Part shown: piece by piece, positions 2,826-63,707 of the stretch
Position numbering within the stretch: the first letter of the stretch is position 1
Layout: each line of letters begins with the position of its first letter
Sequence record: MW373745.1
Reading direction: 5' to 3' (one strand)
DNA: 64,000 nt
The notes under the pieces: model-generated
What the model was told of the DNA's origin: nothing
What the model saw: only the letters and a program-made list of their open reading frames with translations
Database searches by the model: none
Made by a program: the position numbers and the translations under genes

Positions 2826-3326
2826 ATGGATAGTTTAAAGTTAGTTAAAAATCTTATTAAAACCAAATCGGTTGAAAAAGGACAAATTTTAAAACCTGGT
2901 AATTTAGTAATTTTTAAATATAATCCTAAAGATACCAGTGTTAAATATGATAGAACTCCATTGTGCCTGGTACTCAGAAAATCTAAATCTTATACCTTAG
3001 GTATAAATTTTCACTGGTGCCCGATACCAATGAGAAAAATGCTTTTAAATGCCATATTTCGACTAAATAAAAAGAATATTAAAGAGAATAAACCATTAGA
3101 TATAGATTGGTATAGAATTAAGCCTATGCTCAAAAAGTTTGGATTTTTTCCAATAATAAGACTTTATATTAATAGCAGAATATATAGAAGAGCAGTCAAA
3201 ATACCTAATGAAAATATGAAACAAATTATAGAAACTAAAACAGAAACTTTTATAGGTGTTTCTGCAGAAGCTTTGTATAAGAAAGCGCTTAGGGATTCAA
3301 AAGTTTCAAGTAAATCTAAAAAATGA
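2826..3326 (+). CDS. T4 gp2-like DNA end protector
   Basis: FKYNPK, YDRTPL and LGINFHW resemble the gp2 family. Confidence 0.6.
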   Translation: MDSLKLVKNLIKTKSVEKGQILKPGNLVIFKYNPKDTSVKYDRTPLCLVLRKSKSYTLGINFHWCPIPMRKMLLNAIFRLNKKNIKENKPLDIDWYRIKPMLKKFGFFPIIRLYINSRIYRRAVKIPNENMKQIIETKTETFIGVSAEALYKKALRDSKVSSKSKK

Positions 3327-3499
3327 AACATTTTTTAATTTAAAGCTTATAAGATTATAATATTATAATATCATAACATATAAACAATCTAAACTAAAGT
3401 TCAAAGCTTTTAAAACAACTAAAACTAAAGTTTAAATTTTTGTAATTTAAAACTCAAGGTTATTAAATCATAAATAAAATCAAAAGACAAAAGGCTCCA

Positions 3500-4951
3500 A
3501 TGAAAACTTATGTCGTTGATACCAACATCATTTTAGATGATGTAAATAATCTCTCACGTTTATACGATAGTGAAAATCGTATTATAATCCCCGAAACAGT
3601 TATTGATGAATTAGATGCTAAAAAATCATTATTCGATGAAGTTGGATACCAAGCCCGTAATTTTGCAAGACTTTTATCAAATCTTGATGTCATTGAACTT
3701 AATAAATTCAATGACTATACTGAGACAACACTGGGTGATTCTCTTTTAAAAGTAACTATTACTAGTAAAAAAGAATATAAACACGCAGATGAACCTATTA
3801 ATATTCTAAATGATAGAAAAATTATAGAAGTTGCTAAGTTATATCCAGATTGTATTTTTATAACATATGATAGTATGTGCAAGATAAGAGCTATATCTGA
3901 AGGGGTAAAAACTGAGACATTCGGTTTAAAAAAAGATTTTAATGAAGTTCCAGAGTTTTTTAAAGTTCTCGATGTTGAGAAATTACCAGAAAATCTTAGC
4001 AGCATTTTAAGTGTAGATCCAGATTATAAACACGAAAATTATAACTACTTAATACAGAGTAAAGATGGTAATAAAAAACTAGCAAGGATACAAAATCACA
4101 GAATTAATTACATAGACGAAAAACACTTGGAAAAACAAGATGTCAAACCTATTAATATCCGTCAAAAATATTTCGTGGATGCTATGCTAGATACTAATGT
4201 AGATTTACAAGTTGTTTCTGCAGTTTCAGGATCAGGTAAAAGCTTATTAGCTATTGCGACTGGTATCAGATTAGTTAAAGAAAAACAATATAGTAAAATT
4301 GTTTATATACGTAACTCAATTGAATCTTTAGATAAAGGTGAAGATATTGGATATCTTGCTGGAAATGACGAAAAGTTTGCGGTTTTTAATCACCCACTAT
4401 ATGATTCTTTAGAATATATTGTTAGAAAAAGACTTGAAAAATCTAATGATAATAAATCAAGAAAAGTTAAAATTGATAATTTAAAAATACAAGAAGGTAT
4501 TAAAGAAATTATTGAGTTATCTGGTATCGAAACTATGTGGATTGGTGCTTTGCGTGGTAGAACAATTTCGGATGCGTTTGTTATTGTGGATGAATCCCAA
4601 AATATCTCTACTAAGTCAATGAGCACCATATTAACAAGAGTTGACAAGGATTGTAAAGTTATAATAATTGGTTCAAACTCACAAATAGACAATCAATATA
4701 TTAATAAGTATAACAACGCTTTAACAGTTCTTCAAAATGCAGTTAAAAATCCTAGCATAATTAATACTTGGGGTGGTGAGTTAATTAATGTGGTTCGTGG
4801 ACCTATAACTGAGTTTGCTGAACAAATTTTTAATAAAGATTCAAAACAAGAACCAGAGACTATGAAATCTTTTGTAGATTCTGGTATTAGCACACTTGAA
4901 GTGAATACAAATACTGAGAACTTAGAAATAAAATTAGACTCTGCTAGCTAA
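3500..4951 (+). CDS. phoH: PIN-domain/PhoH-family ATPase
   Basis: N-terminal PIN (YVVDTNIILDD, VIDELD, NDRKI) plus Walker A AVSGSGKS, LRGRT and IVDESQN. Confidence 0.9.
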   Translation: MKTYVVDTNIILDDVNNLSRLYDSENRIIIPETVIDELDAKKSLFDEVGYQARNFARLLSNLDVIELNKFNDYTETTLGDSLLKVTITSKKEYKHADEPINILNDRKIIEVAKLYPDCIFITYDSMCKIRAISEGVKTETFGLKKDFNEVPEFFKVLDVEKLPENLSSILSVDPDYKHENYNYLIQSKDGNKKLARIQNHRINYIDEKHLEKQDVKPINIRQKYFVDAMLDTNVDLQVVSAVSGSGKSLLAIATGIRLVKEKQYSKIVYIRNSIESLDKGEDIGYLAGNDEKFAVFNHPLYDSLEYIVRKRLEKSNDNKSRKVKIDNLKIQEGIKEIIELSGIETMWIGALRGRTISDAFVIVDESQNISTKSMSTILTRVDKDCKVIIIGSNSQIDNQYINKYNNALTVLQNAVKNPSIINTWGGELINVVRGPITEFAEQIFNKDSKQEPETMKSFVDSGISTLEVNTNTENLEIKLDSAS

Positions 4952-40255: not shown

Positions 40256-40435
40256 NNNNNNNNNNNNNNNNNNNNNNNNNNNNNNNNNNNNNNNNNNNNN
40301 NNNNNNNNNNNNNNNNNNNNNNNNNNNNNNNNNNNNNNNNNNNNNNNNNNNNNNNTGCTAGGATATATAGCATTGTTATATACTACTAAAAAGCCAAGCA
40401 TTTTTTATACTTTTTAATATTAGTTTAAGATTTAA
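40256..40435 (-). repeat. Assembly gap plus reverse-orientation copy of the ~85-bp repeat unit
   Basis: N run 40256-40355; 40356-40435 is the reverse complement of the unit at 42.3 kb. Confidence 0.85.
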
Positions 40436-42255: not shown

Positions 42256-42550
42256 AAAAAATGCTTGGCTTTTTAGTAGTATATAACAATGCTATATATC
42301 CTAGTACATGCTTAAATCTTAAACTAATATTAAAAAGTATAAAAAATGCTTGGCTTTTTAGTAGTATATACTATAGTATCATNNNNNNNNNNNNNNNNNN
42401 NNNNNNNNNNNNNNNNNNNNNNNNNNNNNNNNNNNNNNNNNNNNNNNNNNNNNNNNNNNNNNNNNNNNNNNNNNNNNNNNNNTATATCTAAAACTTAAAG
42501 CAATATTAAAAAGTATAAAAAATGCTTGGCTTTTTAGTATATACTATAAT
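42256..42550 (+). repeat. Tandem ~85-bp repeat array containing an assembly gap
   Basis: Core aaaaaatgcttggctttttagta at 42256, 42341 and ~42517; N run 42383-42482. Confidence 0.85.
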
Positions 42551-42630: not shown

Positions 42631-43290
42631 ATGAAAGATACAGTTTTAAGCCTAAGTGGTGGTTTAGACTCAAGTGCTTTACTATTTGAGTTTAAAGATC
42701 GTATTAAGATTGCTGTAAGTTTTAAATACGGTTCAAATCATCAAGAAAAAGAACTAGCAGCTGCTAAAAAAGTCTTGGATGAAGTAAATAAATTAGGTGC
42801 TGAAATCGAACATAGAATAATCGATTTAACAGAAGCTTTTGGAACTTTTAAAAGTGCTTTATTAAGCGGTTCTAAAGCAGTTCCCGAAGCTGGTTCAACT
42901 GAAGTTTCAAATGTAATTGTTCCGTTTAGAAATGGTATATTCTTAAGTATCTTAACGGGTATAGCAGAATCAGAAGATTGTAGATTTATTGCTATAGCAA
43001 ACCACAGTGGTGATTCTAACGTATTTCCAGATTGTAGATATGATTTTATCGATGCTATGTTTAAAGCCATTGGTTCAGGAACCGAAGACAGAGTTCAGGT
43101 ATTCGCACCGTATACAAATATTACAAAAACTGATTTGACAATCCGTGGTATATCTAATGGTTTAAACCCAGATTGGACTTACAGCTGCTATAAAGGTGGT
43201 AATAAACCTTGTAATGAATGTTCTGCTTGTGTTGATCGTAACAAAGCAGTTCAAGAAGCCGCAACAGTTCTAAAACATTTTAGTTCTTAA
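42631..43290 (+). CDS. queC: 7-cyano-7-deazaguanine synthase
   Basis: SGGLDS, VPFRNGIFLS, FPDCR and TYSCY..PC..C..C zinc site. Confidence 0.9.
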   Translation: MKDTVLSLSGGLDSSALLFEFKDRIKIAVSFKYGSNHQEKELAAAKKVLDEVNKLGAEIEHRIIDLTEAFGTFKSALLSGSKAVPEAGSTEVSNVIVPFRNGIFLSILTGIAESEDCRFIAIANHSGDSNVFPDCRYDFIDAMFKAIGSGTEDRVQVFAPYTNITKTDLTIRGISNGLNPDWTYSCYKGGNKPCNECSACVDRNKAVQEAATVLKHFSS

Positions 43291-43336
43291 TTTATAGACT
43301 ATTAAGTTTTAATATATTATAATATTCTAATCGTTT

Positions 43337-43389
43337 ACACTAAAGTGTAAAGCAACAACACTTTAGTGTTAATTTTAGAACTTTAGTGT
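43337..43389. promoter_or_regulatory. Two full and one partial ACACTWWAGTGT palindromes upstream of the polymerase
   Basis: 43337-43348, 43358-43369 and partial 43378-43389; 20-21-bp period. Confidence 0.6.
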
Positions 43390-43420
43390 AAGTCACTAAA
43401 ATTAGAACCAAAGGAGAAAT

Positions 43421-45628
43421 ATGAAACTATTCGAAGCTTGCTTCAATTTAGGTAATTTTGAAACTTATGAAAGATTCTATAATACAGAAACTAATAAGTC
43501 TGAAATTCAAAAAGTCTTTCTTAAGAATCAAGTTTTTATTGAGGATCCTAAAGGAGAATATACATTTTTATTAGATCCAAATATTAAACTAACAAAAGTT
43601 CAAGCTAATCAAGCTAAAGATTTAGAAACTTATGGTAAGACTAATATTGCTGCTGAACATATTAGGCAGAACTATTGGAAACTCAATGATTCAAAATATA
43701 ATAAAAATATAAGTATTTTTTATCTGGATATAGAAACTACGGCACACTCACCTATTGACACCGAAGCTTGTAGAGAAAGAATAGTTTCAATTCAAGTATA
43801 TCATAACTTAACGAATACAAATTATATTTTTACAAATGAGTTCTTTGACACCGAAGCTCATACTAAAGATTCTAAATATATTTTCGATGATAGGACTTAT
43901 GATTTTAAACTTAAATACTATCAAGTAGAAGGTGAACATAATTTATTAATTGCTTTATTTAAACTTATAGAAGCTTTAAAACCTTTATTAGTATTAGCTC
44001 ACAATGGTGAAGGTTTTGACTTTGCTTATCTTTGGAGAAGAACTGAAAAGTTAGGTTTAACTGAAGGATTTAGTCCATTTGGAAAATCTGAATTTCAAAT
44101 AAATGAATTAGATAATGGAACTAAAAAATACAGTATAAAAGCGCCCGGTGTTTTCTATATGGATACTATAGATATCTATAAGAAGTTTAGACTTAAACCG
44201 AGAGAATCTTATTCATTAGATTATATTGCAGAAGTTGAATTAGGTGAAAGAAAAGTTAATCACGATTGTTTTAAAACTTTTGATGGTTTTAGAACCGGTG
44301 AAGGATTTATTAGACCAGAAGTTGAACCTAGCAAAGAATCTATTTTAGAATATAAACTTTATAATGCTAAAGATTCTGAAGAAATAAAAAGAATTTCTAA
44401 AGAATATTTTATTCATTATAGTATTATAGATACATACTTATTATATAGAATAGATAATGCAATTAAATTATCTGATATTATGATTAGTATTGCTTCTATT
44501 ATGGGTATTCAATTACCTCAAACACTTGGAACAACAACTCCTTGGAGTACATTTATCCGAAATTATGCAATGCAAGATAAAATAGTATTACCAAATCCAA
44601 GTGAATTTAGTGGTGATGTAGAATTTAAAGGGGGCTTTGTAGCTGAACCATTAATTGGTAGATATGATTGGGTTTTTTCAGCGGACGTTACCAGTATGTA
44701 TCCTAGTCAAATTATGGCATTTAATTTAAGTTCTGAAACATTTATACCATTTTATAAATTGCCAAATGATTTACAAGAAGCTATAAATGAATTAGATCTT
44801 AATGAAGATGAACAATATCATATTAATAATTATTATAAAAATCCCGAAGCTTATAAAAAATACACGGATTTACTTATAAAGTATAATTATTGCGGATCAT
44901 TAACTGGATCTGTGTATGATAAATCTAAAAAAGGTATTCTACCAATATTAACAGAATTAGTTTTCAATCTTAGAAAAGCAGCTAAAAAAGAAATGTTAAA
45001 ATATGAGCAAATGGCTGAAGATGCTAAAGAACCTGAATTAATACAAAAATACCAAGCATTAGCAACTGAATTGGATGTCAATCAATTGACATTTAAGATT
45101 TTAATTAACTCATTATATGGAGCTTGTGGAAATAAACATTTTATTCTATATAATAAAGAAATCGCTAAAGCTATCACAGGAAATTCAAGATTTTATATAA
45201 ATCTTATGAGTAAAAATATCAATAATTTTTTGTGCGATTTATGTGGTTCTGGAAATTATATAATTTATAATGATACTGACTCCGTTGTTGGGGATTCAAT
45301 TATTAAAGTAAATGGTAAAAATATTAAAATAGAAGATTTTTATGATTCTATAAAAGTTGATCCTATTGTTACAAAATCTGGTAATAATGTAAAATTAGTA
45401 GATAATTGTTTTACAGATTCTGTAAATAAAAACTTACAAATTGAAACTAAAAAAATTAATTATATAATGAAACATAAAGTTAAGAAGGAATTTTTTAAAA
45501 TAAAAGTCAATAATAAAGAAGTGGTCGTAACCGAAGATCATAGCATTATGGTTTTAAGAAATTCTGAATTAATTGAGGTTAAACCAAGAGATATTAAAAC
45601 AGGAGACTTAATAATATTAAATGACTGA
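43421..45628 (+). CDS. Family B DNA polymerase N-fragment fused to split intein IntN (45281-45625, 115 aa)
   Basis: DIET exonuclease, DVTSMYPS motif A, KILINSLYG motif B, YNDTD followed by SVVGDS...TEDHS intein; T4 gp43-like. Confidence 0.95.
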   Translation: MKLFEACFNLGNFETYERFYNTETNKSEIQKVFLKNQVFIEDPKGEYTFLLDPNIKLTKVQANQAKDLETYGKTNIAAEHIRQNYWKLNDSKYNKNISIFYLDIETTAHSPIDTEACRERIVSIQVYHNLTNTNYIFTNEFFDTEAHTKDSKYIFDDRTYDFKLKYYQVEGEHNLLIALFKLIEALKPLLVLAHNGEGFDFAYLWRRTEKLGLTEGFSPFGKSEFQINELDNGTKKYSIKAPGVFYMDTIDIYKKFRLKPRESYSLDYIAEVELGERKVNHDCFKTFDGFRTGEGFIRPEVEPSKESILEYKLYNAKDSEEIKRISKEYFIHYSIIDTYLLYRIDNAIKLSDIMISIASIMGIQLPQTLGTTTPWSTFIRNYAMQDKIVLPNPSEFSGDVEFKGGFVAEPLIGRYDWVFSADVTSMYPSQIMAFNLSSETFIPFYKLPNDLQEAINELDLNEDEQYHINNYYKNPEAYKKYTDLLIKYNYCGSLTGSVYDKSKKGILPILTELVFNLRKAAKKEMLKYEQMAEDAKEPELIQKYQALATELDVNQLTFKILINSLYGACGNKHFILYNKEIAKAITGNSRFYINLMSKNINNFLCDLCGSGNYIIYNDTDSVVGDSIIKVNGKNIKIEDFYDSIKVDPIVTKSGNNVKLVDNCFTDSVNKNLQIETKKINYIMKHKVKKEFFKIKVNNKEVVVTEDHSIMVLRNSELIEVKPRDIKTGDLIILND

Positions 45629-46623
45629 ATCATATTTTAACGATTTCAAACAATTTTTAAAATCTGAAGTTAAAAATGGTAAATTGCCTTATACAACTAT
45701 GTACAAATATTTACTCACGTTTAGCGAATACAGACCTAAAAATTTATACGCGCGATACCGACGTTTACGCAAATACACTAAGGGTGTTATAACGAAATAT
45801 AAATGTTTGCTGCTATACGGTAAAACCGGAGCGCTAAAAAAAATGGACAAGTTATTGTAATAGACAAGCATATACAAATACAAAAGAATATAAAATGAAT
45901 GTGCTGGGTATGAGTGATTATGAAGTAGATTGTTATAATCAATCCAGAGCGGTGACTAAGAAAAATTTAATAATGCGTTACGGTGAAGACCTAGGTAATA
46001 AAAAATGGGAGGATTATAGACATAGACAGGCATACACAAATACAAAAGAATACTTTGTTGAAAAATATGGTGAAATTGTAGGCGAACAGAAATATTATAA
46101 CATCAACGCAAGTAAAGCAATCACTCGTGAAAATCTTATTAAAAAATATGGTGAATACCTAGGTAATGAAAAGTGGCTTAATTTTTTAAATAACAAAAAG
46201 TGTATAGGTTATTCAAAAATGGCTACAAAATTATTTGAAGAATTGGAATCCAAATTAGGAAATAATTATACTTTTTATTATGAACCAAAAACAAGAGAAA
46301 TAGTATTAAATTCTAACGGAACTCCGTATTTTTATGATTGTTATATCAAAGAATTAAAATTAATAATAGAATTTAATGGTGATGTATTTCACGCAAATCC
46401 TAAAATATTTAATAGCCACGACAATCCCAATCCATTTGACAAGACATTGACTACTGAGGAAATATGAGAAGCAGATAATAGAAAAATTAATCACGCTTTA
46501 GATAATGGCTATAAAATTATAATAATTTGGGAAAACGAACTTAGAATTAATACAAATTTAAGTAATATTATTATAGAATATATAAAATCGAATAATTTAT
46601 TAGATTTAAAGGAGTTTATTTGA
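45621..46623 (+). pseudogene. Vsr/DUF559-like homing endonuclease disrupted by a frameshift (A8, ~45836-45843) and a TGA (46465-46467)
   Basis: KW..Y..RQAYTNTKEY repeats continue across the frameshift; YDCY..IIEFNGDVFH then EEI*EADNRKI..ALDNGYKIIIIWE in frame to 46623. Confidence 0.75.
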
Positions 46624-47525
46624 TAGTAACTGAAAATTTCCAAGTAGAATCTTTAGGTATCCAAGAATTAGATGTCTATGATATTGAAGTAGATTCTAAT
46701 CATAATTTTTTTGCTAATGATATATTAGTTCATAACAGTTGTTATGTTCAAGTACCTAATATTATAAACGAAAAATTACCAAAAGACCCACAATTAGCAA
46801 CAGATATAATTGATAAATTTATAGAAACTAAAATACAACCGGTAATTAACACAAGCTCACAAGAATTAGGGTCTATTTTTAATGCTTTAGATGCTTCAAG
46901 AATTTCTGCAAAGCGTGAAGCGATTGCAAGCTCTGCTGTGTTTGTAGCAAAGAAAAGATATTTTATGAAAGTTATAGATTCTGAAGGTGTTAGGTTCAGT
47001 GAACCTTATCTTAAAACAATGGGTATCGATATTGTCAGATCCAGTACACCAGCATTTTCTAAAAAATATCTTAAAAAATCCGTCAATATTATATTAGAAA
47101 GTACAGAAGAAGAACTTAAAGAATGGTTAAAAAATATTAGATCATTATACCTGGGTCAAAATCTAATGGATATTGCTAAGATATCTTCGGTCAGTTCTAG
47201 CAAATATAAACTTGGTGTGGATAAATCCATACCGATTAATTCAAGAGCTTTCTTGGTATCAAATCATTATATAAATAGTCTAAATACAGGTGAGTTTCAA
47301 CCATTAGAATTAGGCGAAAAGGTTCGTATGCTATATCTTAGAGAACCTAACCCATTAAAATCTAACATTTTTGCTTTTAATAATGAAAAATTTGCAAATG
47401 TATTTAAAGATTATATAGATTGGGATACTAATTTTAATAAGTTCTTTTTAAAACCACTTGAAATAATGACAGACCCACTTAATTATAATTTACATAAAGA
47501 AACTGAAACTTTGGAGGAATGGTAA
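46620..47525 (+). CDS. Split intein IntC (39 aa, 46620-46736) fused to DNA polymerase C-fragment
   Basis: VYDIEV..NHNFFAN.ILVHN followed by SCY; AKKRY and MGIDIVRSSTP PolB motifs; AAGGAG RBS, TTG start. Confidence 0.95.
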   Translation: MIVTENFQVESLGIQELDVYDIEVDSNHNFFANDILVHNSCYVQVPNIINEKLPKDPQLATDIIDKFIETKIQPVINTSSQELGSIFNALDASRISAKREAIASSAVFVAKKRYFMKVIDSEGVRFSEPYLKTMGIDIVRSSTPAFSKKYLKKSVNIILESTEEELKEWLKNIRSLYLGQNLMDIAKISSVSSSKYKLGVDKSIPINSRAFLVSNHYINSLNTGEFQPLELGEKVRMLYLREPNPLKSNIFAFNNEKFANVFKDYIDWDTNFNKFFLKPLEIMTDPLNYNLHKETETLEEW

Positions 47526-47755
47526 TGGATATACTCGGTGTTTACAATTATATTAAATCTTATATTTTAAAAGGATACAATTATTTAAAAAGTAATTATT
47601 CTTTTATTACTATAATGATATTATTATTTGGCACTATTTGGTTAGCTTATAATTTATTATTTGCTGTAATTTTTATTGTTTTCTTTTTAATAGGTTCGTT
47701 TGTTTTATTTGCATATCTTGATTCTGCAATAGACGACATTAATTTTAAAAAATAA
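47519..47755 (+). CDS. Small membrane protein
   Basis: Hydrophobic C-terminal half; GAGG RBS. Confidence 0.6.
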   Translation: MVMDILGVYNYIKSYILKGYNYLKSNYSFITIMILLFGTIWLAYNLLFAVIFIVFFLIGSFVLFAYLDSAIDDINFKK

Positions 47756-48534
47756 TGATTAATAGGGCTGTTATAACTAGGTGTTTCAAATATAATGGCT
47801 CTATGTTCGATGCTTTTGAATATTTTTATAGACTTTGGGAATTAGATCCTGATACTAAATTTGTTTCATTGTACAGTCATATCAATAAAGATTTTTTAAG
47901 CATTAAATACAACGTAGATCCAAAATGTTTTGATAATTTTATATATAAAGATCCATATGATTTAGAATTTAACAAAGTTTTATTATTCGATACTCACGAT
48001 TTCTATAATATAAATCACCCAAAATCCCTTAAATTAAATAAGTTATATGTAATCGCTAACAGCACCATAGGGTTCAAAGAAAATACTGAATATTTTGATG
48101 AATATTTTTTAAATAAAAATTATATTAATAAAATATATTATCAGATTCACAGAATATTTAATCATTTAGATAATGTATATGTTAATTGTATGGATAATTG
48201 CTGCAAGAGTTATTTAAATATTCTTAAAATGTATCCGAAAGCAATTATCAAAGATCCTAAAAATAATTTTCAACATTACACAATGACTAAGAATTTTATA
48301 CCGGATATTTACAAGTATTTTAATAAGTACATATATGTTAAAACTGGTAGAACTTATGATAGACACCCAAGACAATTTACAGAATGTGCTTACCAAGGCA
48401 TTGATTGTGAATATATTTCTGAAGGTTCTAAATTCACAAAAAATGATAATTCATATTATAGATTCGAAGATAGATATGATTTTGATAAGAGATCTATATA
48501 CAACGATATAGTTATATCTAAAATGCTCGATTAA
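47755..48534 (+). CDS. Hypothetical protein, possible glycosyltransferase-like; paralog of 12368-13156
   Basis: GSMFDAFEYFY and PRQFTECAYQG. Confidence 0.5.
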   Translation: MINRAVITRCFKYNGSMFDAFEYFYRLWELDPDTKFVSLYSHINKDFLSIKYNVDPKCFDNFIYKDPYDLEFNKVLLFDTHDFYNINHPKSLKLNKLYVIANSTIGFKENTEYFDEYFLNKNYINKIYYQIHRIFNHLDNVYVNCMDNCCKSYLNILKMYPKAIIKDPKNNFQHYTMTKNFIPDIYKYFNKYIYVKTGRTYDRHPRQFTECAYQGIDCEYISEGSKFTKNDNSYYRFEDRYDFDKRSIYNDIVISKMLD

Positions 48535-60178: not shown

Positions 60179-61783
60179 TTGAATTTAGACACTATACATA
60201 TTGTTAAAAATAACGGAGAACGTGAAATATTCGATGCTGAAAAAATACATAAACACTTACATTTTGCTTGTCAAAACCTCGATGTAGATATTATTAGCAT
60301 TATTAAAGATGCTAGATTAAAAATATTTGATGGTGCCAAAAGTGTAGACATACAAGATTCTTTAATTAAATCTGCACAAGAAAAAATCAGTGAAGATTCT
60401 CCAGATTATGAGTTAGTTGCTGGTAGATTATTAAATCAAAAACTCAGAAAAGAAGTTTATAAACAATACACACCATTAGATTTTAAATCACAAGTTAAAG
60501 AACGTATTAAAAAAGGTTTCTATACTGAAGATCTTAATGCTTATAGTGATGAAGAGCTTGACTATTTTGGATCTTTAATTAATTATGAATTAGATAACGA
60601 ACTACCTTACAGCGCATTAAATCAAATGTATTCTAAGTACTTGATCAAACATAATAAAAAATGCATTGAGGTTCCTCAAGAAGTTTTTATATTGATACCA
60701 ATGGCTATTTTTTATAATACCGATATAGAATATAGAAAAAAATATGTTAAACTTGGGTATGAATTATTATCACAGCGTAAAATTTCTTTACCTACTCCTA
60801 TTATGAATGGAGCAAGAACAAGTTATAAGAAATTTATATCTTGTAATTTATTAAACTTTGGTGATTCAGTTGAAAGCTTTGCTAGGGGTTTAGAAGCTGT
60901 TTTAAAATGCACCAGTGCTAAAAGTGGTTTAGGTATCAATACAAGTTTCATCAGAGGTTTAGGAGCTCCAGTAGGTAAACCTTCAAGATTAGATCATACT
61001 GGTATGCTGCCGATCGTTAAAGCCATTGAATCTGCTACGTCTGCGCTGATTCAGCACGGCAGGGGCGGTGCAAGCAATCTGTCAATGCCTTTCTTTCACT
61101 ACGAAATAGAATTATTTTCACAACTAGGTGATTCTAAAGGATCTTTAGAAAATAGGGCTAGACATACTGATCAAACTATTATCATCAATAAATGGTTCTT
61201 AGAAAAAGCTCTTAATAAAGAGGATATATTTTTATTCCATATGAATGCTGTAGGTAATAAGGATCCCAAATTAGATTTATATGATGCCTTAGGTGATTAT
61301 AAAAGATTCGATGAATTATATAAACATTATAGCGCTAAAGTTCCTAATAAAAGTAAAAAGAAAATTAATGCTTATGATTTATTATCTTTAATTATAAATG
61401 AGAGAATGATTACTGGTAGAGTTTATATTGTTTTTGCGGATAACTTCGTTAATTCAAGTTTTAAAGAAAATCTATATATGACAAATCTTTGTTGTTTAGC
61501 AGGTGATACAATTGTTGAAACTTCACAAGGGCCTAAATTTCTCAAAGATATTAAAAAAGGAGATCTTGTTTTAAGTTATAATCAAGATACAAAAAAATAT
61601 GAATACAAAGAAGTACTAGCAGCTGTTTTAACAAATCCGGAAGCTGAAGTTTTTGAAGTAGAATTCAATGGTAAAGTGGTCATTTGCACTAGTGATCATA
61701 AATTCTTAACCCAAAGGGGTTATATTGAAGCTCAACATCTTTTAGAAAGTGATACAATAGTAGAATGTTCCTCCCGTATTTAG
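60179..61783 (+). CDS. nrdA: Class Ia ribonucleotide reductase alpha N-fragment fused to split intein IntN (61493-61780, 96 aa)
   Basis: ATP cone, PTPIMNGART, SCN, GRGGA; TNLC followed by CLAGDT...CTSDHKFLT.RG intein. Confidence 0.93.
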   Translation: MNLDTIHIVKNNGEREIFDAEKIHKHLHFACQNLDVDIISIIKDARLKIFDGAKSVDIQDSLIKSAQEKISEDSPDYELVAGRLLNQKLRKEVYKQYTPLDFKSQVKERIKKGFYTEDLNAYSDEELDYFGSLINYELDNELPYSALNQMYSKYLIKHNKKCIEVPQEVFILIPMAIFYNTDIEYRKKYVKLGYELLSQRKISLPTPIMNGARTSYKKFISCNLLNFGDSVESFARGLEAVLKCTSAKSGLGINTSFIRGLGAPVGKPSRLDHTGMLPIVKAIESATSALIQHGRGGASNLSMPFFHYEIELFSQLGDSKGSLENRARHTDQTIIINKWFLEKALNKEDIFLFHMNAVGNKDPKLDLYDALGDYKRFDELYKHYSAKVPNKSKKKINAYDLLSLIINERMITGRVYIVFADNFVNSSFKENLYMTNLCCLAGDTIVETSQGPKFLKDIKKGDLVLSYNQDTKKYEYKEVLAAVLTNPEAEVFEVEFNGKVVICTSDHKFLTQRGYIEAQHLLESDTIVECSSRI

Positions 61784-62139
61784 AAGAAATAACATATTTA
61801 GATAAACCGAATAAACATAATCTTAATTTCTTTAGAAAAACATATTTAATGGATTTCTTTGAATTAGGATTAGTATTCGACGAAAATGAAGATTTAATTG
61901 GTATTAAAAATGAAGATACTACATCAGGCTATTTACCACTACATTTTAATAGTATATTAGAACTCTCAGAGTTTTTATATGCTTTTAATGGCGCGTGGGT
62001 AGCAAAGAAAGTATTGGATGATTGCCAGAAAATGGATATGGTGATTAAGCAAATGTCTGAAGAACTCGGTATACCAGAAGAGGTTATTAGAAATGGCAAG
62101 TTTCAAAGAAAGGGCTATTTTAAGAATGGCTACATTTAG
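61765..62139 (+). CDS. Hypothetical protein inside the split nrdA
   Basis: 124-aa ORF overlapping both neighbours; no nuclease motif recognised. Confidence 0.6.
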   Translation: MFLPYLEEITYLDKPNKHNLNFFRKTYLMDFFELGLVFDENEDLIGIKNEDTTSGYLPLHFNSILELSEFLYAFNGAWVAKKVLDDCQKMDMVIKQMSEELGIPEEVIRNGKFQRKGYFKNGYI

Positions 62140-62644
62140 ACACAATAACTTGTTATATTATGTTATAATTGAAAGGAGAAGGGGTGTCAAAGGTGACCAT
62201 ACTTGTGTAGAACCACATTTTGGTGCTTTTGTAACTGATATAGAAAATATCTTAAAAATTTCTGATACTAAGCAATTGTTGTTACAACTCAAACACAGAA
62301 AGGATATTTTAAAGATTTTAAACCCAGATAAAATAGAAACAAATTCTCAATTAGTTTTATCCTATGTATTAAGTGTTCTAAGAGATTATATTAAAGAACA
62401 TTATACATTGTTTATTAAGCTTGTGACTAATGAAGAATTAATGAAAAAATATATAAAATTATTACCTTATGTTTGTACTGATTTAAAGTATACTCCTATA
62501 GATATTTCAAATGAAATTAGAACGGATTTTGATGGAACTAGGAAGCGTTTTCTTGTGCTATTGCTCAGAAAATCAAAAGATTTAGACAAACAAGATGTAC
62601 TAAAATCACTTAGTAATATCAATTTAAGTAATTATATATTATAA
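62093..62644 (+). CDS. Hypothetical protein inside the split nrdA; paralog of 22705-23292
   Basis: EPHFG.F and VLSYVLSVL.DY. Confidence 0.65.
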   Translation: MASFKERAILRMATFRHNNLLYYVIIERRRGVKGDHTCVEPHFGAFVTDIENILKISDTKQLLLQLKHRKDILKILNPDKIETNSQLVLSYVLSVLRDYIKEHYTLFIKLVTNEELMKKYIKLLPYVCTDLKYTPIDISNEIRTDFDGTRKRFLVLLLRKSKDLDKQDVLKSLSNINLSNYIL

Positions 62645-62663
62645 TAACAATAAAAGAGGTGCT

Positions 62664-63707
62664 ATGATAAAAATAACTAAAAAAACTGAAAAAATACCTG
62701 TATACGATATAGAAGTTAAGGATAATCATAACTTTTTTGCAAATGGATTGTGTGTTCACAATTGTGAAATATCTGTGCCTAGTCATAGTTTAGATAATTA
62801 TAGGGGTATACCAGGAGAACTAGGAACTTGTATCTTAGGTAATATAAATTTTGGACATTCTAAAGAATCTGACATCCCAAAAGTTGCTGATTTCTTAGTT
62901 AGGTTCTTAGATAATATGATTGATATTTCTGATTTTGCTATGCCAGAAATTGAATACTCAGCTACAAAACGTAGAACATTAGGTATTGGTGTTTCTAACT
63001 TATTTGGATATCTTGCTAAATCGAAATTATTTTACAATACAAAAGAAGCACGCGAACATATTAATGATTTAATGGAATTATTTTATTTTAACTTAGTTAA
63101 AACTTCAATAGATTTAGCAAAAGAACGAGGTGCTTGTGAATTATATAATGAATCTTTTTATAGTGATAATAAGTTTATATTCGAAAGATATTTAGAAGCT
63201 GGGATTAAACCTGAATTTAAAACAAAATTAGATTGGGAGTCACTTCGTGAAGAATTATCTAAATACGGTATGCGCCATTCAAGCTTGTCAGCTGTACCGC
63301 CCGCTGGGAACAGTTCAAAGCCAAGCTCAGCAACACCTGGTATCGAACCTCCAAGAGAATTAGTAACTATTAAAACAGAAAAAAGTTCTACTGTAAAACA
63401 GTTGGTTCCTTTCTATAAAACAGCCAAAAAATATTATACGACTGCTTGGGGTGTTGACTTTAATAATAAAGATTATCTTAAATTAGTGAGTACAATACAA
63501 AGATATGTAGATCAAAGTATTAGTACAAATCAATATTATAATATCGTAGAAACTAAAAAAGTTAATATTGAAGATGTTATAGAAGAATTTATAGAATGCT
63601 TCAATTTAGGTGTCAAATCATTGTATTATGCTAATTTTAGAACTACAGATGATGCAGATGGTGATCAAGTAATTGAAGGTTGTGGGTCTGGAGGTTGTAG
63701 CGTTTAA
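62664..63707 (+). CDS. nrdA: Split intein IntC (33 aa, 62664-62762) fused to NrdA C-fragment
   Basis: VYDIEV..NHNFFANG..VHN followed by CEI; TCILG, RRTLGIG, PPAGNSS, KSLYY and C-terminal CGSGGC. Confidence 0.93.
   Translation: MIKITKKTEKIPVYDIEVKDNHNFFANGLCVHNCEISVPSHSLDNYRGIPGELGTCILGNINFGHSKESDIPKVADFLVRFLDNMIDISDFAMPEIEYSATKRRTLGIGVSNLFGYLAKSKLFYNTKEAREHINDLMELFYFNLVKTSIDLAKERGACELYNESFYSDNKFIFERYLEAGIKPEFKTKLDWESLREELSKYGMRHSSLSAVPPAGNSSKPSSATPGIEPPRELVTIKTEKSSTVKQLVPFYKTAKKYYTTAWGVDFNNKDYLKLVSTIQRYVDQSISTNQYYNIVETKKVNIEDVIEEFIECFNLGVKSLYYANFRTTDDADGDQVIEGCGSGGCSV

Follow-up and report, generated by a model that had tools for sequence, protein, structure and literature searches.

An allele of the CP21 PolB1 split intein, with a decayed endonuclease gene, in the DNA polymerase of the Campylobacter phage CJLB-13

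The polB locus

The DNA analysed here is a stretch of 64,000 nucleotides (nt) from sequence record MW373745.1, which we refer to as the window, and our subject is a 4.1 kb segment of it (43421-47525) in which polB, the gene for a T4 gp43-like DNA polymerase, is carried as two separate pieces. In comparison with phages, this segment is identical in DNA sequence to Campylobacter phage CJLB-13 (MW373745; 100%), and has 99.5% identity to F379 and 99.1% to CP21, all three being members of Firehammervirus, the T4-like "group II" Campylobacter myoviruses. Each piece of the polymerase is fused to one half of an intein and an endonuclease pseudogene lies between them, so that from 5' to 3' the locus comprises:

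43421..45280 (+), N-terminal part of PolB (the N-extein), 620 amino acids, with exonuclease domain, motif A DVTSMYPS, motif B KILINSLYG and motif C YNDTD
45281..45628 (+), N-terminal half of the intein (IntN), 115 amino acids (45281-45625) and TGA stop (45626-45628), with Ser1, C43, K64-H65 and T84-E-D-H87
45621..46623 (+), pseudogene of a predicted free-standing Vsr-like homing endonuclease, 1003 nt
45836..45843 (+), first lesion of the endonuclease gene, an A8 homopolymer that is A7 in CP21 (from the alignment of the window, F379 and CP21)
46465..46467 (+), second lesion of the endonuclease gene, an in-frame TGA; CP21 has TGG, encoding W282, which is invariant in the family
46609..46614 (+), AAGGAG, a Shine-Dalgarno-like element read from the sequence, 5 nt ahead of the TTG that starts the C-fragment
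46620..46736 (+), C-terminal half of the intein (IntC), 39 amino acids, TTG start, with block F VYDIEV...HNFFAN and the ending D-I-L-V-H-N; no cysteine
46737..47525 (+), C-terminal part of PolB (the C-extein), 262 amino acids and stop, with Ser+1 (AGT, 46737-46739), then C-Y-V-Q-V, and a KKRY motif

The first fragment is a single open reading frame (ORF; 43421-45628) whose extein closes with ...IIYNDTD at 45280 and whose intein half begins directly afterwards with S-V-V-G-D-S. The N-extein matches the Pfam families DNA_pol_B_exo1 (E-value 2.4e-13) and DNA_pol_B (1.8e-22), carries both catalytic aspartates of motif C and is collinear with the uninterrupted 882 amino acid polymerase of phage CP220 and others; the C-extein also matches DNA_pol_B and is collinear with the intein-free alleles. 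The length of the sister polymerase equals the sum of the 620 and 262 extein residues of the window, and since intein-free sisters read ...YNDTDSVYVQV... through the junction, the insertion point is fixed. An initial annotation of this DNA, made from the letters and their translated ORFs, had described motif C as cut into YNDTD / SCY, and this is borne out both by the ORF translations and by the intein-free sisters; the sizes, end residues, Ser+1 and single internal cysteine (in DNCF) that it gave for the two intein halves likewise agree with what we find. IntN and IntC stand on separate ORFs in different frames, each fused to one half of the polymerase and with lengths typical of a split at the canonical endonuclease site (100-120 and 35-45 amino acids), and a ribosome-binding site has been annotated in F379 at the position equivalent to the AAGGAG above.

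The Pfam profile Intein_splicing (PF14890) matches IntN over profile positions 6-94 (E-value 8e-11, 42.4 bits, with a cut-off of 35.8) and IntC alone over positions 131-155 (E-value 9e-7, 29.2 bits); the latter score falls under the whole-domain cut-off, as expected for a piece of only 39 amino acids, and the two matched ranges show that the halves are complementary. The catalytic blocks of a class-1 intein are complete. Specifically, these are; 1) Ser1, which the Aes and CP21 inteins have at the aligned position; 2) K64-H65 (...NYIMKHKVKK...), which aligns with the NX motif of Aes123 and of all relatives; 3) T84-x-x-H87 of block B, where T84-E-D-H87 is invariant across 20 aligned relatives; 4) the block F aspartate in VYDIEV; and, 5) H38-N39 at the end of IntC. 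The only cysteine of the whole intein, C43, occupies a non-conserved position, and the cysteine that follows Ser+1 belongs to the C-extein. Cysteine-independent inteins are known to have no catalytic cysteine and to carry a lysine or arginine before the histidine of the NX motif (PMC10189870). As far as sequence can confirm it, the locus thus encodes a naturally split class-1 HINT intein of the Ser1/Ser+1 type, inserted within motif C of PolB (YNDTD / SCY).

Relation to published split inteins

By sequence comparison, the intein of the window and the CP21 PolB1 split intein are alleles of each other; the element is in that sense real and ordinary, and already known. CP21 PolB1 was characterised by the Mootz laboratory (Angew Chem 2025, PMC12707363) as a Ser1/Ser+1 intein with an IntN of 115 and an IntC of 39 amino acids, one non-conserved cysteine (C43) and 52.4% identity to the Aes123 PolB1 intein. 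The coordinates given in the supplement of that study (NC_019507.1:179333-177122 and 176131-175225) are those of the CP21 locus that we aligned, and the printed IntC construct followed by SCY is the IntC of the window. The window and CP21 agree in all 39 residues of IntC, with identical DNA, and in 113 of the 115 residues of IntN, the differences (D46 in place of Glu and T107 in place of Asn) both falling at variable positions; in F379, IntN is identical to that of the window and so is the DNA of IntC. Gene, insertion point, split point, half lengths (115 + 39), Ser1/Ser+1, C43 and the +1 to +3 residues SCY are therefore common to the window and CP21, which differ in two conservative IntN substitutions and in the endonuclease gene, intact in CP21 and broken here.

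The published protein trans-splices at 37 °C without reductant at a rate of 19.4e-3 per s, a half-time of 35.7 s, although only about 40% of the N-precursor reacted (PMC12707363). Splicing without thiols, which the initial annotation had mentioned as the asset of Ser1/Ser+1 inteins of the Aes123 type, has in this way been shown in vitro for the CP21 allele. The suggestion of a new protein-engineering tool does not stand in the same way, since CP21 PolB1 has already been expressed, measured and passed over for another intein (PMC12707363), and the further suggestion that splicing provides a post-translational control point found no support.

The likeness to the Aes123 PolB1 intein of Aeromonas salmonicida T4-like phages, from which the engineered CL and CLm derivatives come, was also correctly recognised. 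It extends to the motif C site (Y-x-DTD / S), the cysteine-independent Ser1/Ser+1 chemistry, the NX-motif histidine and the order IntN, Vsr-like endonuclease, IntC with overlapping ORFs; IntN is 48% and the endonuclease 34% identical between the two, and a solved Aes-type intein (PDB 9hth_A) matches the IntN of the window with an E-value of 2.8e-23. The Aes123 intein differs in having an IntN of 120 amino acids (with an IntC of 39) and is no more than about 50% identical in sequence. The Aeromonas loci, whose annotation reads 'intein-containing split DNA polymerase precursor', differ further in an extra upstream split of polB (gp43A/gp43B) and, in some alleles, a group I intron.

The endonuclease gene and its decay

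The initial annotation was silent on the endonuclease gene between the halves and its decay, as it was on the contiguous and empty sister alleles and on switching in the wider family, and these are treated here and in the sections that follow. The ATG of the endonuclease gene (45621) overlaps the stop of IntN, and its original stop (TGA, 46621-46623) overlaps the TTG of IntC. Its CP21 counterpart, CP21_248, is an intact ORF of 333 amino acids. Genes at the same position in Aes123 ('putative VSR endonuclease', 34% identity, E-value 4e-42) and in Vibrio phage VPALA (28%, 4e-23) are homologous to it, it matches phrog_22677 (7e-164), and relatives occur in phages of Tenacibaculum, Prevotella (Lak), Klebsiella and Desulfovibrio. 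Residues D239, E250, G253-D254, H257 and W282 are invariant in five homologues, and a profile of these five ranks three E. coli Vsr structures first, with weak E-values of 0.05-0.08, the conserved residues aligning to the active-site region of Vsr, whose catalytic core consists of Asp51, His69 and Asp97. As a single sequence, the CP21 endonuclease gave no Pfam match and no useful PDB sequence match, and the Aes123 homologue scored 20.5 bits with DUF559, where the cut-off is 20.6.

From these comparisons we tentatively assign the gene to the Vsr-like homing endonuclease type, with a putative cleavage activity. It is the type that Dassa et al. (2009) described in fractured genes (PMC2677866), and its studied representative is I-Bth0305I (PMC3239194), to which the present endonuclease can be likened at the level of the family, by a putative C-terminal nuclease core with invariant Asp, Glu..Gly-Asp..His and Trp; it differs in that its N-terminal half consists of repeats of about 30 amino acids (...KYGE..G..KW..Y...). 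By its layout the locus is, on sequence grounds, a "fractured gene" in the sense of Dassa et al., in whose model the invading endonuclease brings with it the codons that stop the first half and start the second (PMC2677866). As in their examples gp41-1, NrdJ-1 and IMPDH-1, the host gene is split inside an intein by a free-standing Vsr-like endonuclease on the same strand; those loci come from ocean metagenomes and are mostly of the cysteine type, whereas the present intein comes from cultured phages with a comparable series of alleles. The same three-part layout is found in phages of Aeromonas, Vibrio and Tenacibaculum.

In the window, the endonuclease reading frame is lost through the A8 homopolymer (45836-45843) that replaces the A7 of CP21, and a TGA (46465-46467) takes the place of the invariant W282 codon. 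Both lesions are also present in F379, an independent isolate from Denmark, and are therefore real and not sequencing errors. Judging by these reading frames, the endonuclease is dead in CJLB-13 and F379. The two pseudogenes differ from each other at 19 positions, 18 of them within 264 nt (46130-46393) and mostly synonymous, and the polymerase exteins of the two phages are 99.9% identical. The cluster has the look of a patch acquired by recombination with another allele of the element; no endonuclease paralogue that could account for it was found, each Campylobacter phage genome having one copy.

Four allelic states in Firehammervirus

The locus is polymorphic within the genus, where four states can be distinguished: empty, contiguous, split with an intact endonuclease gene and split with a broken one. 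The empty site is found in CP220, CPt10, CP20, IBB_35, WX1 and CJLB-14 and, apart from one extra T, in CJLB-12; these seven sisters read ...YNDTDSVYVQV... (...GDTDSNYVQV... in CP220), with a single polymerase of 882 amino acids. The contiguous state is represented by phage CC_R7, in which a polymerase of 1035 amino acids contains a mini-intein of 153 residues (115 + 38) and no endonuclease gene; the paper on this phage makes no mention of an intein. CP21 has the split intein with an intact endonuclease gene, and CJLB-13 and F379 have it with a broken one.

Comparison of the window with CC_R7 gives a ratio of non-synonymous to synonymous substitution (dN/dS) of 0.235 for the intein, with the catalytic blocks unchanged. 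The two inteins differ by 16 amino acids, and 11 of these lie at positions 107-123 around the split. The DNA divergence is distributed in the same uneven manner, reaching 40% in the 30 nt before the endonuclease cassette and 38% in the 24 nt after it, compared with 4% (16/405) in the rest of the intein and about 7% in the exteins. We read this pattern as suggesting that the cassette entered a CC_R7-like mini-intein and brought its own short flanks with it, as the model of Dassa et al. predicts; a reverse event, in which the cassette was replaced by a foreign segment free of endonuclease, is also conceivable. We disfavour a derivation of CC_R7 from a CJLB-13-like allele by simple deletion, as the flanks are about 40% divergent and the intein only 4%, although this does not prove the direction of the change.

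The three codons past the junction also separate occupied alleles (AGT-TGT-TAT) from empty ones (TCC-GTG-TAC), and because of this difference the spliced polymerase has a cysteine where empty alleles have a valine; the difference would fit co-conversion. In CJLB-12 the polymerase is 100% identical to the exteins of the window and the 1456-nt element of intein and endonuclease is absent (our locus L008, 2149-2200; window 45278/46737), which implies that the element was gained or lost very recently. Its junction, GAC TCC GTG T TAT GTT, is the empty-site sequence with one T added, by which motif C is frameshifted and the gene annotated as two coding sequences; the added T is due to sequencing or else is a genuine defect. 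In CP220, substitutions crowd a patch of about 60 nt that contains the empty site, and they are richer in GC (IKYGDTDSNYVQVPPKICEKL versus IIYNDTDSVYVQVPNIINEKL; L007, 2131-2215); CC_R7 has the right-hand part of the same patch (PPKICEKL; L003, 3820-3870). The patch may be a relic of co-conversion or a target variant resistant to the endonuclease.

Proposed mechanism and its alternatives

We propose, with high confidence, that polB of CJLB-13 is a fractured gene in which a class-1 intein of motif C, interrupted by a Vsr-like endonuclease gene, trans-splices to yield the normal 882 amino acid polymerase. The HINT intein sits between the catalytic DTD and the serine that follows, and the endonuclease gene interrupts it where endonucleases canonically insert into inteins. 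A single transcript probably covers the whole locus. No intrinsic terminator was found within 43200-47800, and regulatory hairpins of the kind described by Dassa et al. were absent from the IntN/endonuclease and endonuclease/IntC junctions (fold z-scores of +0.97 and +0.24), which makes a single transcript plausible; promoter-like matches at the locus carry no information, the DNA being 27% GC. The N-fragment (exonuclease, palm, fingers and IntN) and the C-fragment (IntC and thumb) would be translated separately, after which IntN and IntC would associate and fold into one intein. Through oxyesters, that is by an N-O shift at Ser1, attack of Ser+1 and cyclisation of the terminal asparagine, ...YNDTD would then be ligated to SCYVQ..., giving a polymerase of normal length with motif C restored. 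The endonuclease presumably once spread the element by homing. As it is dead in CJLB-13 and F379, the element would now be a fixed, immobile passenger, tolerated only because splicing works.

That splicing takes place in infected cells is what we infer from four observations: the catalytic residues are conserved, the intein is under purifying selection, the insert sits on the catalytic DTD, and in CP21, F379 and CJLB-13, all of them cultured lytic isolates, the split gene is the sole polB. The dependence of replication on trans-splicing, which the initial annotation had proposed, is well founded as an inference. Several points weigh against this reading. Purified CP21 IntN was found to 80-90% in soluble aggregates and gave about 40% product in vitro (PMC12707363), a yield explained by the aggregation of most of the purified IntN; and the IntN of the window departs from the one assayed by E46D and N107T, albeit at variable positions. 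Moreover, truncation of the endonuclease ORF would abolish any translational coupling into the C-fragment, whose expression would then depend on its own predicted AAGGAG and TTG.

The main competing explanation is that the two fragments form a non-covalent heterodimer, in which the intein halves are only a high-affinity dimerisation module and splicing is dispensable. There is a precedent in Aeromonas T4-like phages, which run separate gp43A and gp43B proteins split by a GIY-YIG endonuclease gene without an intein (Aes508 annotation; cited in PMC2677866), and it would suit such an enzyme that all three motifs bearing catalytic aspartates are on the N-fragment. The Aeromonas arrangement (phage 25, Aes508 and relatives) does resemble the present one in that a T4-type PolB comes in pieces around a homing endonuclease gene; however, it has no intein at the split, is assembled non-covalently and is divided between domains rather than inside motif C. 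A dispensable splicing reaction is also hard to reconcile with the conservation of all splicing residues in an intein under purifying selection (dN/dS 0.235), with the splicing of the CP21 protein within seconds in vitro (PMC12707363), with the implausibility of a folded 154 amino acid intein as a permanent insert on the catalytic DTD of motif C, or with the contiguous CC_R7 allele, which must cis-splice to free the same site. We therefore consider the heterodimer improbable.

Still less likely is that the draft record shows a polymerase gene that is dead or mis-assembled and so has no biological meaning, even though the CJLB-13 record is an unannotated scaffold with gaps of 100 N, two of them in the window, the CP21 record contains many frameshifts in polB, and CJLB-12 has a 1-nt frameshift at this very site. 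The structure recurs base for base in F379 (Denmark) and CP21 (Germany), which were independently isolated and sequenced, both polymerase fragments are open and complete, and the arrangement is common to distant phages. We see next to no prospect for the idea that the three ORFs are read as one polypeptide, a bifunctional intein with an endonuclease domain, by frameshifting or by recoding of TGA as tryptophan. The internal TGA of the endonuclease gene does stand at a tryptophan codon and the A8 run could slip, but IntN, endonuclease and IntC are in three different frames and their stop and start codons overlap. All 7 tryptophans of the polymerase exteins are encoded by TGG, and TGA does not occur in frame there, which gives no indication of recoding; CP21, with a plain TGG and A7, is still split. 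On these grounds we rejected a read-through polypeptide.

As a discovery the fractured polB adds little: publications already cover the intein and its serine chemistry, how it relates to Aes123 PolB1 and how it performs as a tool, and the published verdict on the tool is lukewarm (fast but prone to aggregation). Two modest additions, both in keeping with the existing model, are the decay of the endonuclease and the series of alleles. What value remains is that of a natural experiment, in that closely related cultured phages between them represent each step of the life cycle proposed for fractured genes and so make homing, endonuclease decay and the transition from cis- to trans-splicing testable at the bench. 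The contiguous allele of CC_R7 may in addition help engineers to see why CP21 IntN aggregates.

The wider family of motif C inteins

We searched IntN against IMG/VR and the JGI metagenomes, which returned 160 loci, and after deduplication classified those in which both halves were visible. Apart from a second copy of CP21, no further Campylobacter-phage allele was found in IMG/VR, the JGI metagenomes or GTDB genomes, the next relatives in these collections being at most 53% identical. The classified loci were distributed as follows:

split, gap of at least 700 nt, with a recognisable Vsr-like gene: 31 loci
split, large gap, without a recognisable Vsr-like gene: 3 loci
split, gap of 300-700 nt, with a Vsr-like remnant: 2 loci
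split, gap under 300 nt, endonuclease gene lost or a remnant: 19 loci
contiguous mini-intein: 7 loci
endonuclease domain in frame: 0 loci

Two registers of insertion into motif C occur, DTD / S and YGD / S...HN / TDS. On a tree, the contiguous state requires 6 changes, at least 4 of which are forced by well-supported branches; this tree is a quick search on the first 100 intein residues, a short alignment with many forks unresolved. One near-identical pair is found among IMG/VR contigs in the second register (at about 3001-4430), where a contiguous intein (L058, ...CLKGKKMD...) and a split one (L063) have IntN sequences of 98.8% nucleotide identity, and where the gene for a Vsr-like endonuclease of 334 amino acids in L063 is a clean insertion at the point equivalent in L058. 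In Aeromonas phage Aes516 (L013, 2501-3026) the endonuclease gene is mostly deleted and the intein is still split, its IntN of 141 amino acids being fused to the former C-terminal tail of the endonuclease (...VVVWDNEYLANKDGT) and overlapping IntC.

Taken together, these sequences leave about evenly balanced, in our judgement, the proposal that split and contiguous states are a fast polymorphism, in which a Vsr-like cassette enters a working mini-intein and may leave it again, as opposed to a slow, one-way adaptation. If this is the case, CC_R7 and CP21/CJLB-13 would be a naturally matched cis/trans pair only 16 residues apart, which would make it possible to test directly whether trans-splicing demands any change in an intein, and which.

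A related intein also splits polB in the jumbo Pseudomonas phage PA5oct (L015, 1302-6528), where the intervening gene, of 560 amino acids, is annotated as a Hef-like homing endonuclease. As this gene is Hef-like and not Vsr-like, the position within the intein may be open to endonucleases of more than one family.

Other features of the window

The genes around the locus are consistent with Firehammervirus, with queC upstream of polB and, in other parts of the window, genes for a DnaB-type helicase and PhoH as well as nrdA. The scaffold gaps of the CJLB-13 record are two runs of exactly 100 N, at 40256-40355 and 42383-42482, the second of which lies upstream of queC, where F379 is annotated with a tandem 'core repeat unit' region.

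The gene nrdA, for the large subunit of ribonucleotide reductase, is a second fractured gene of the window (60179-63707). Its N-terminal part ends in ...YMTNL and continues into an IntN that starts with Cys1 (C-L-A-G-D-T...), and its C-terminal part (62664-63707) opens with an IntC ending in ...NGLCVHN, followed by C-E-I-S. Two ORFs stand between the halves, of 124 (61765-62139) and 183 (62093-62644) amino acids. This insert is likewise polymorphic in the Firehammerviruses, CP21, CJLB-14 and CP220 covering only 64% of the stretch.

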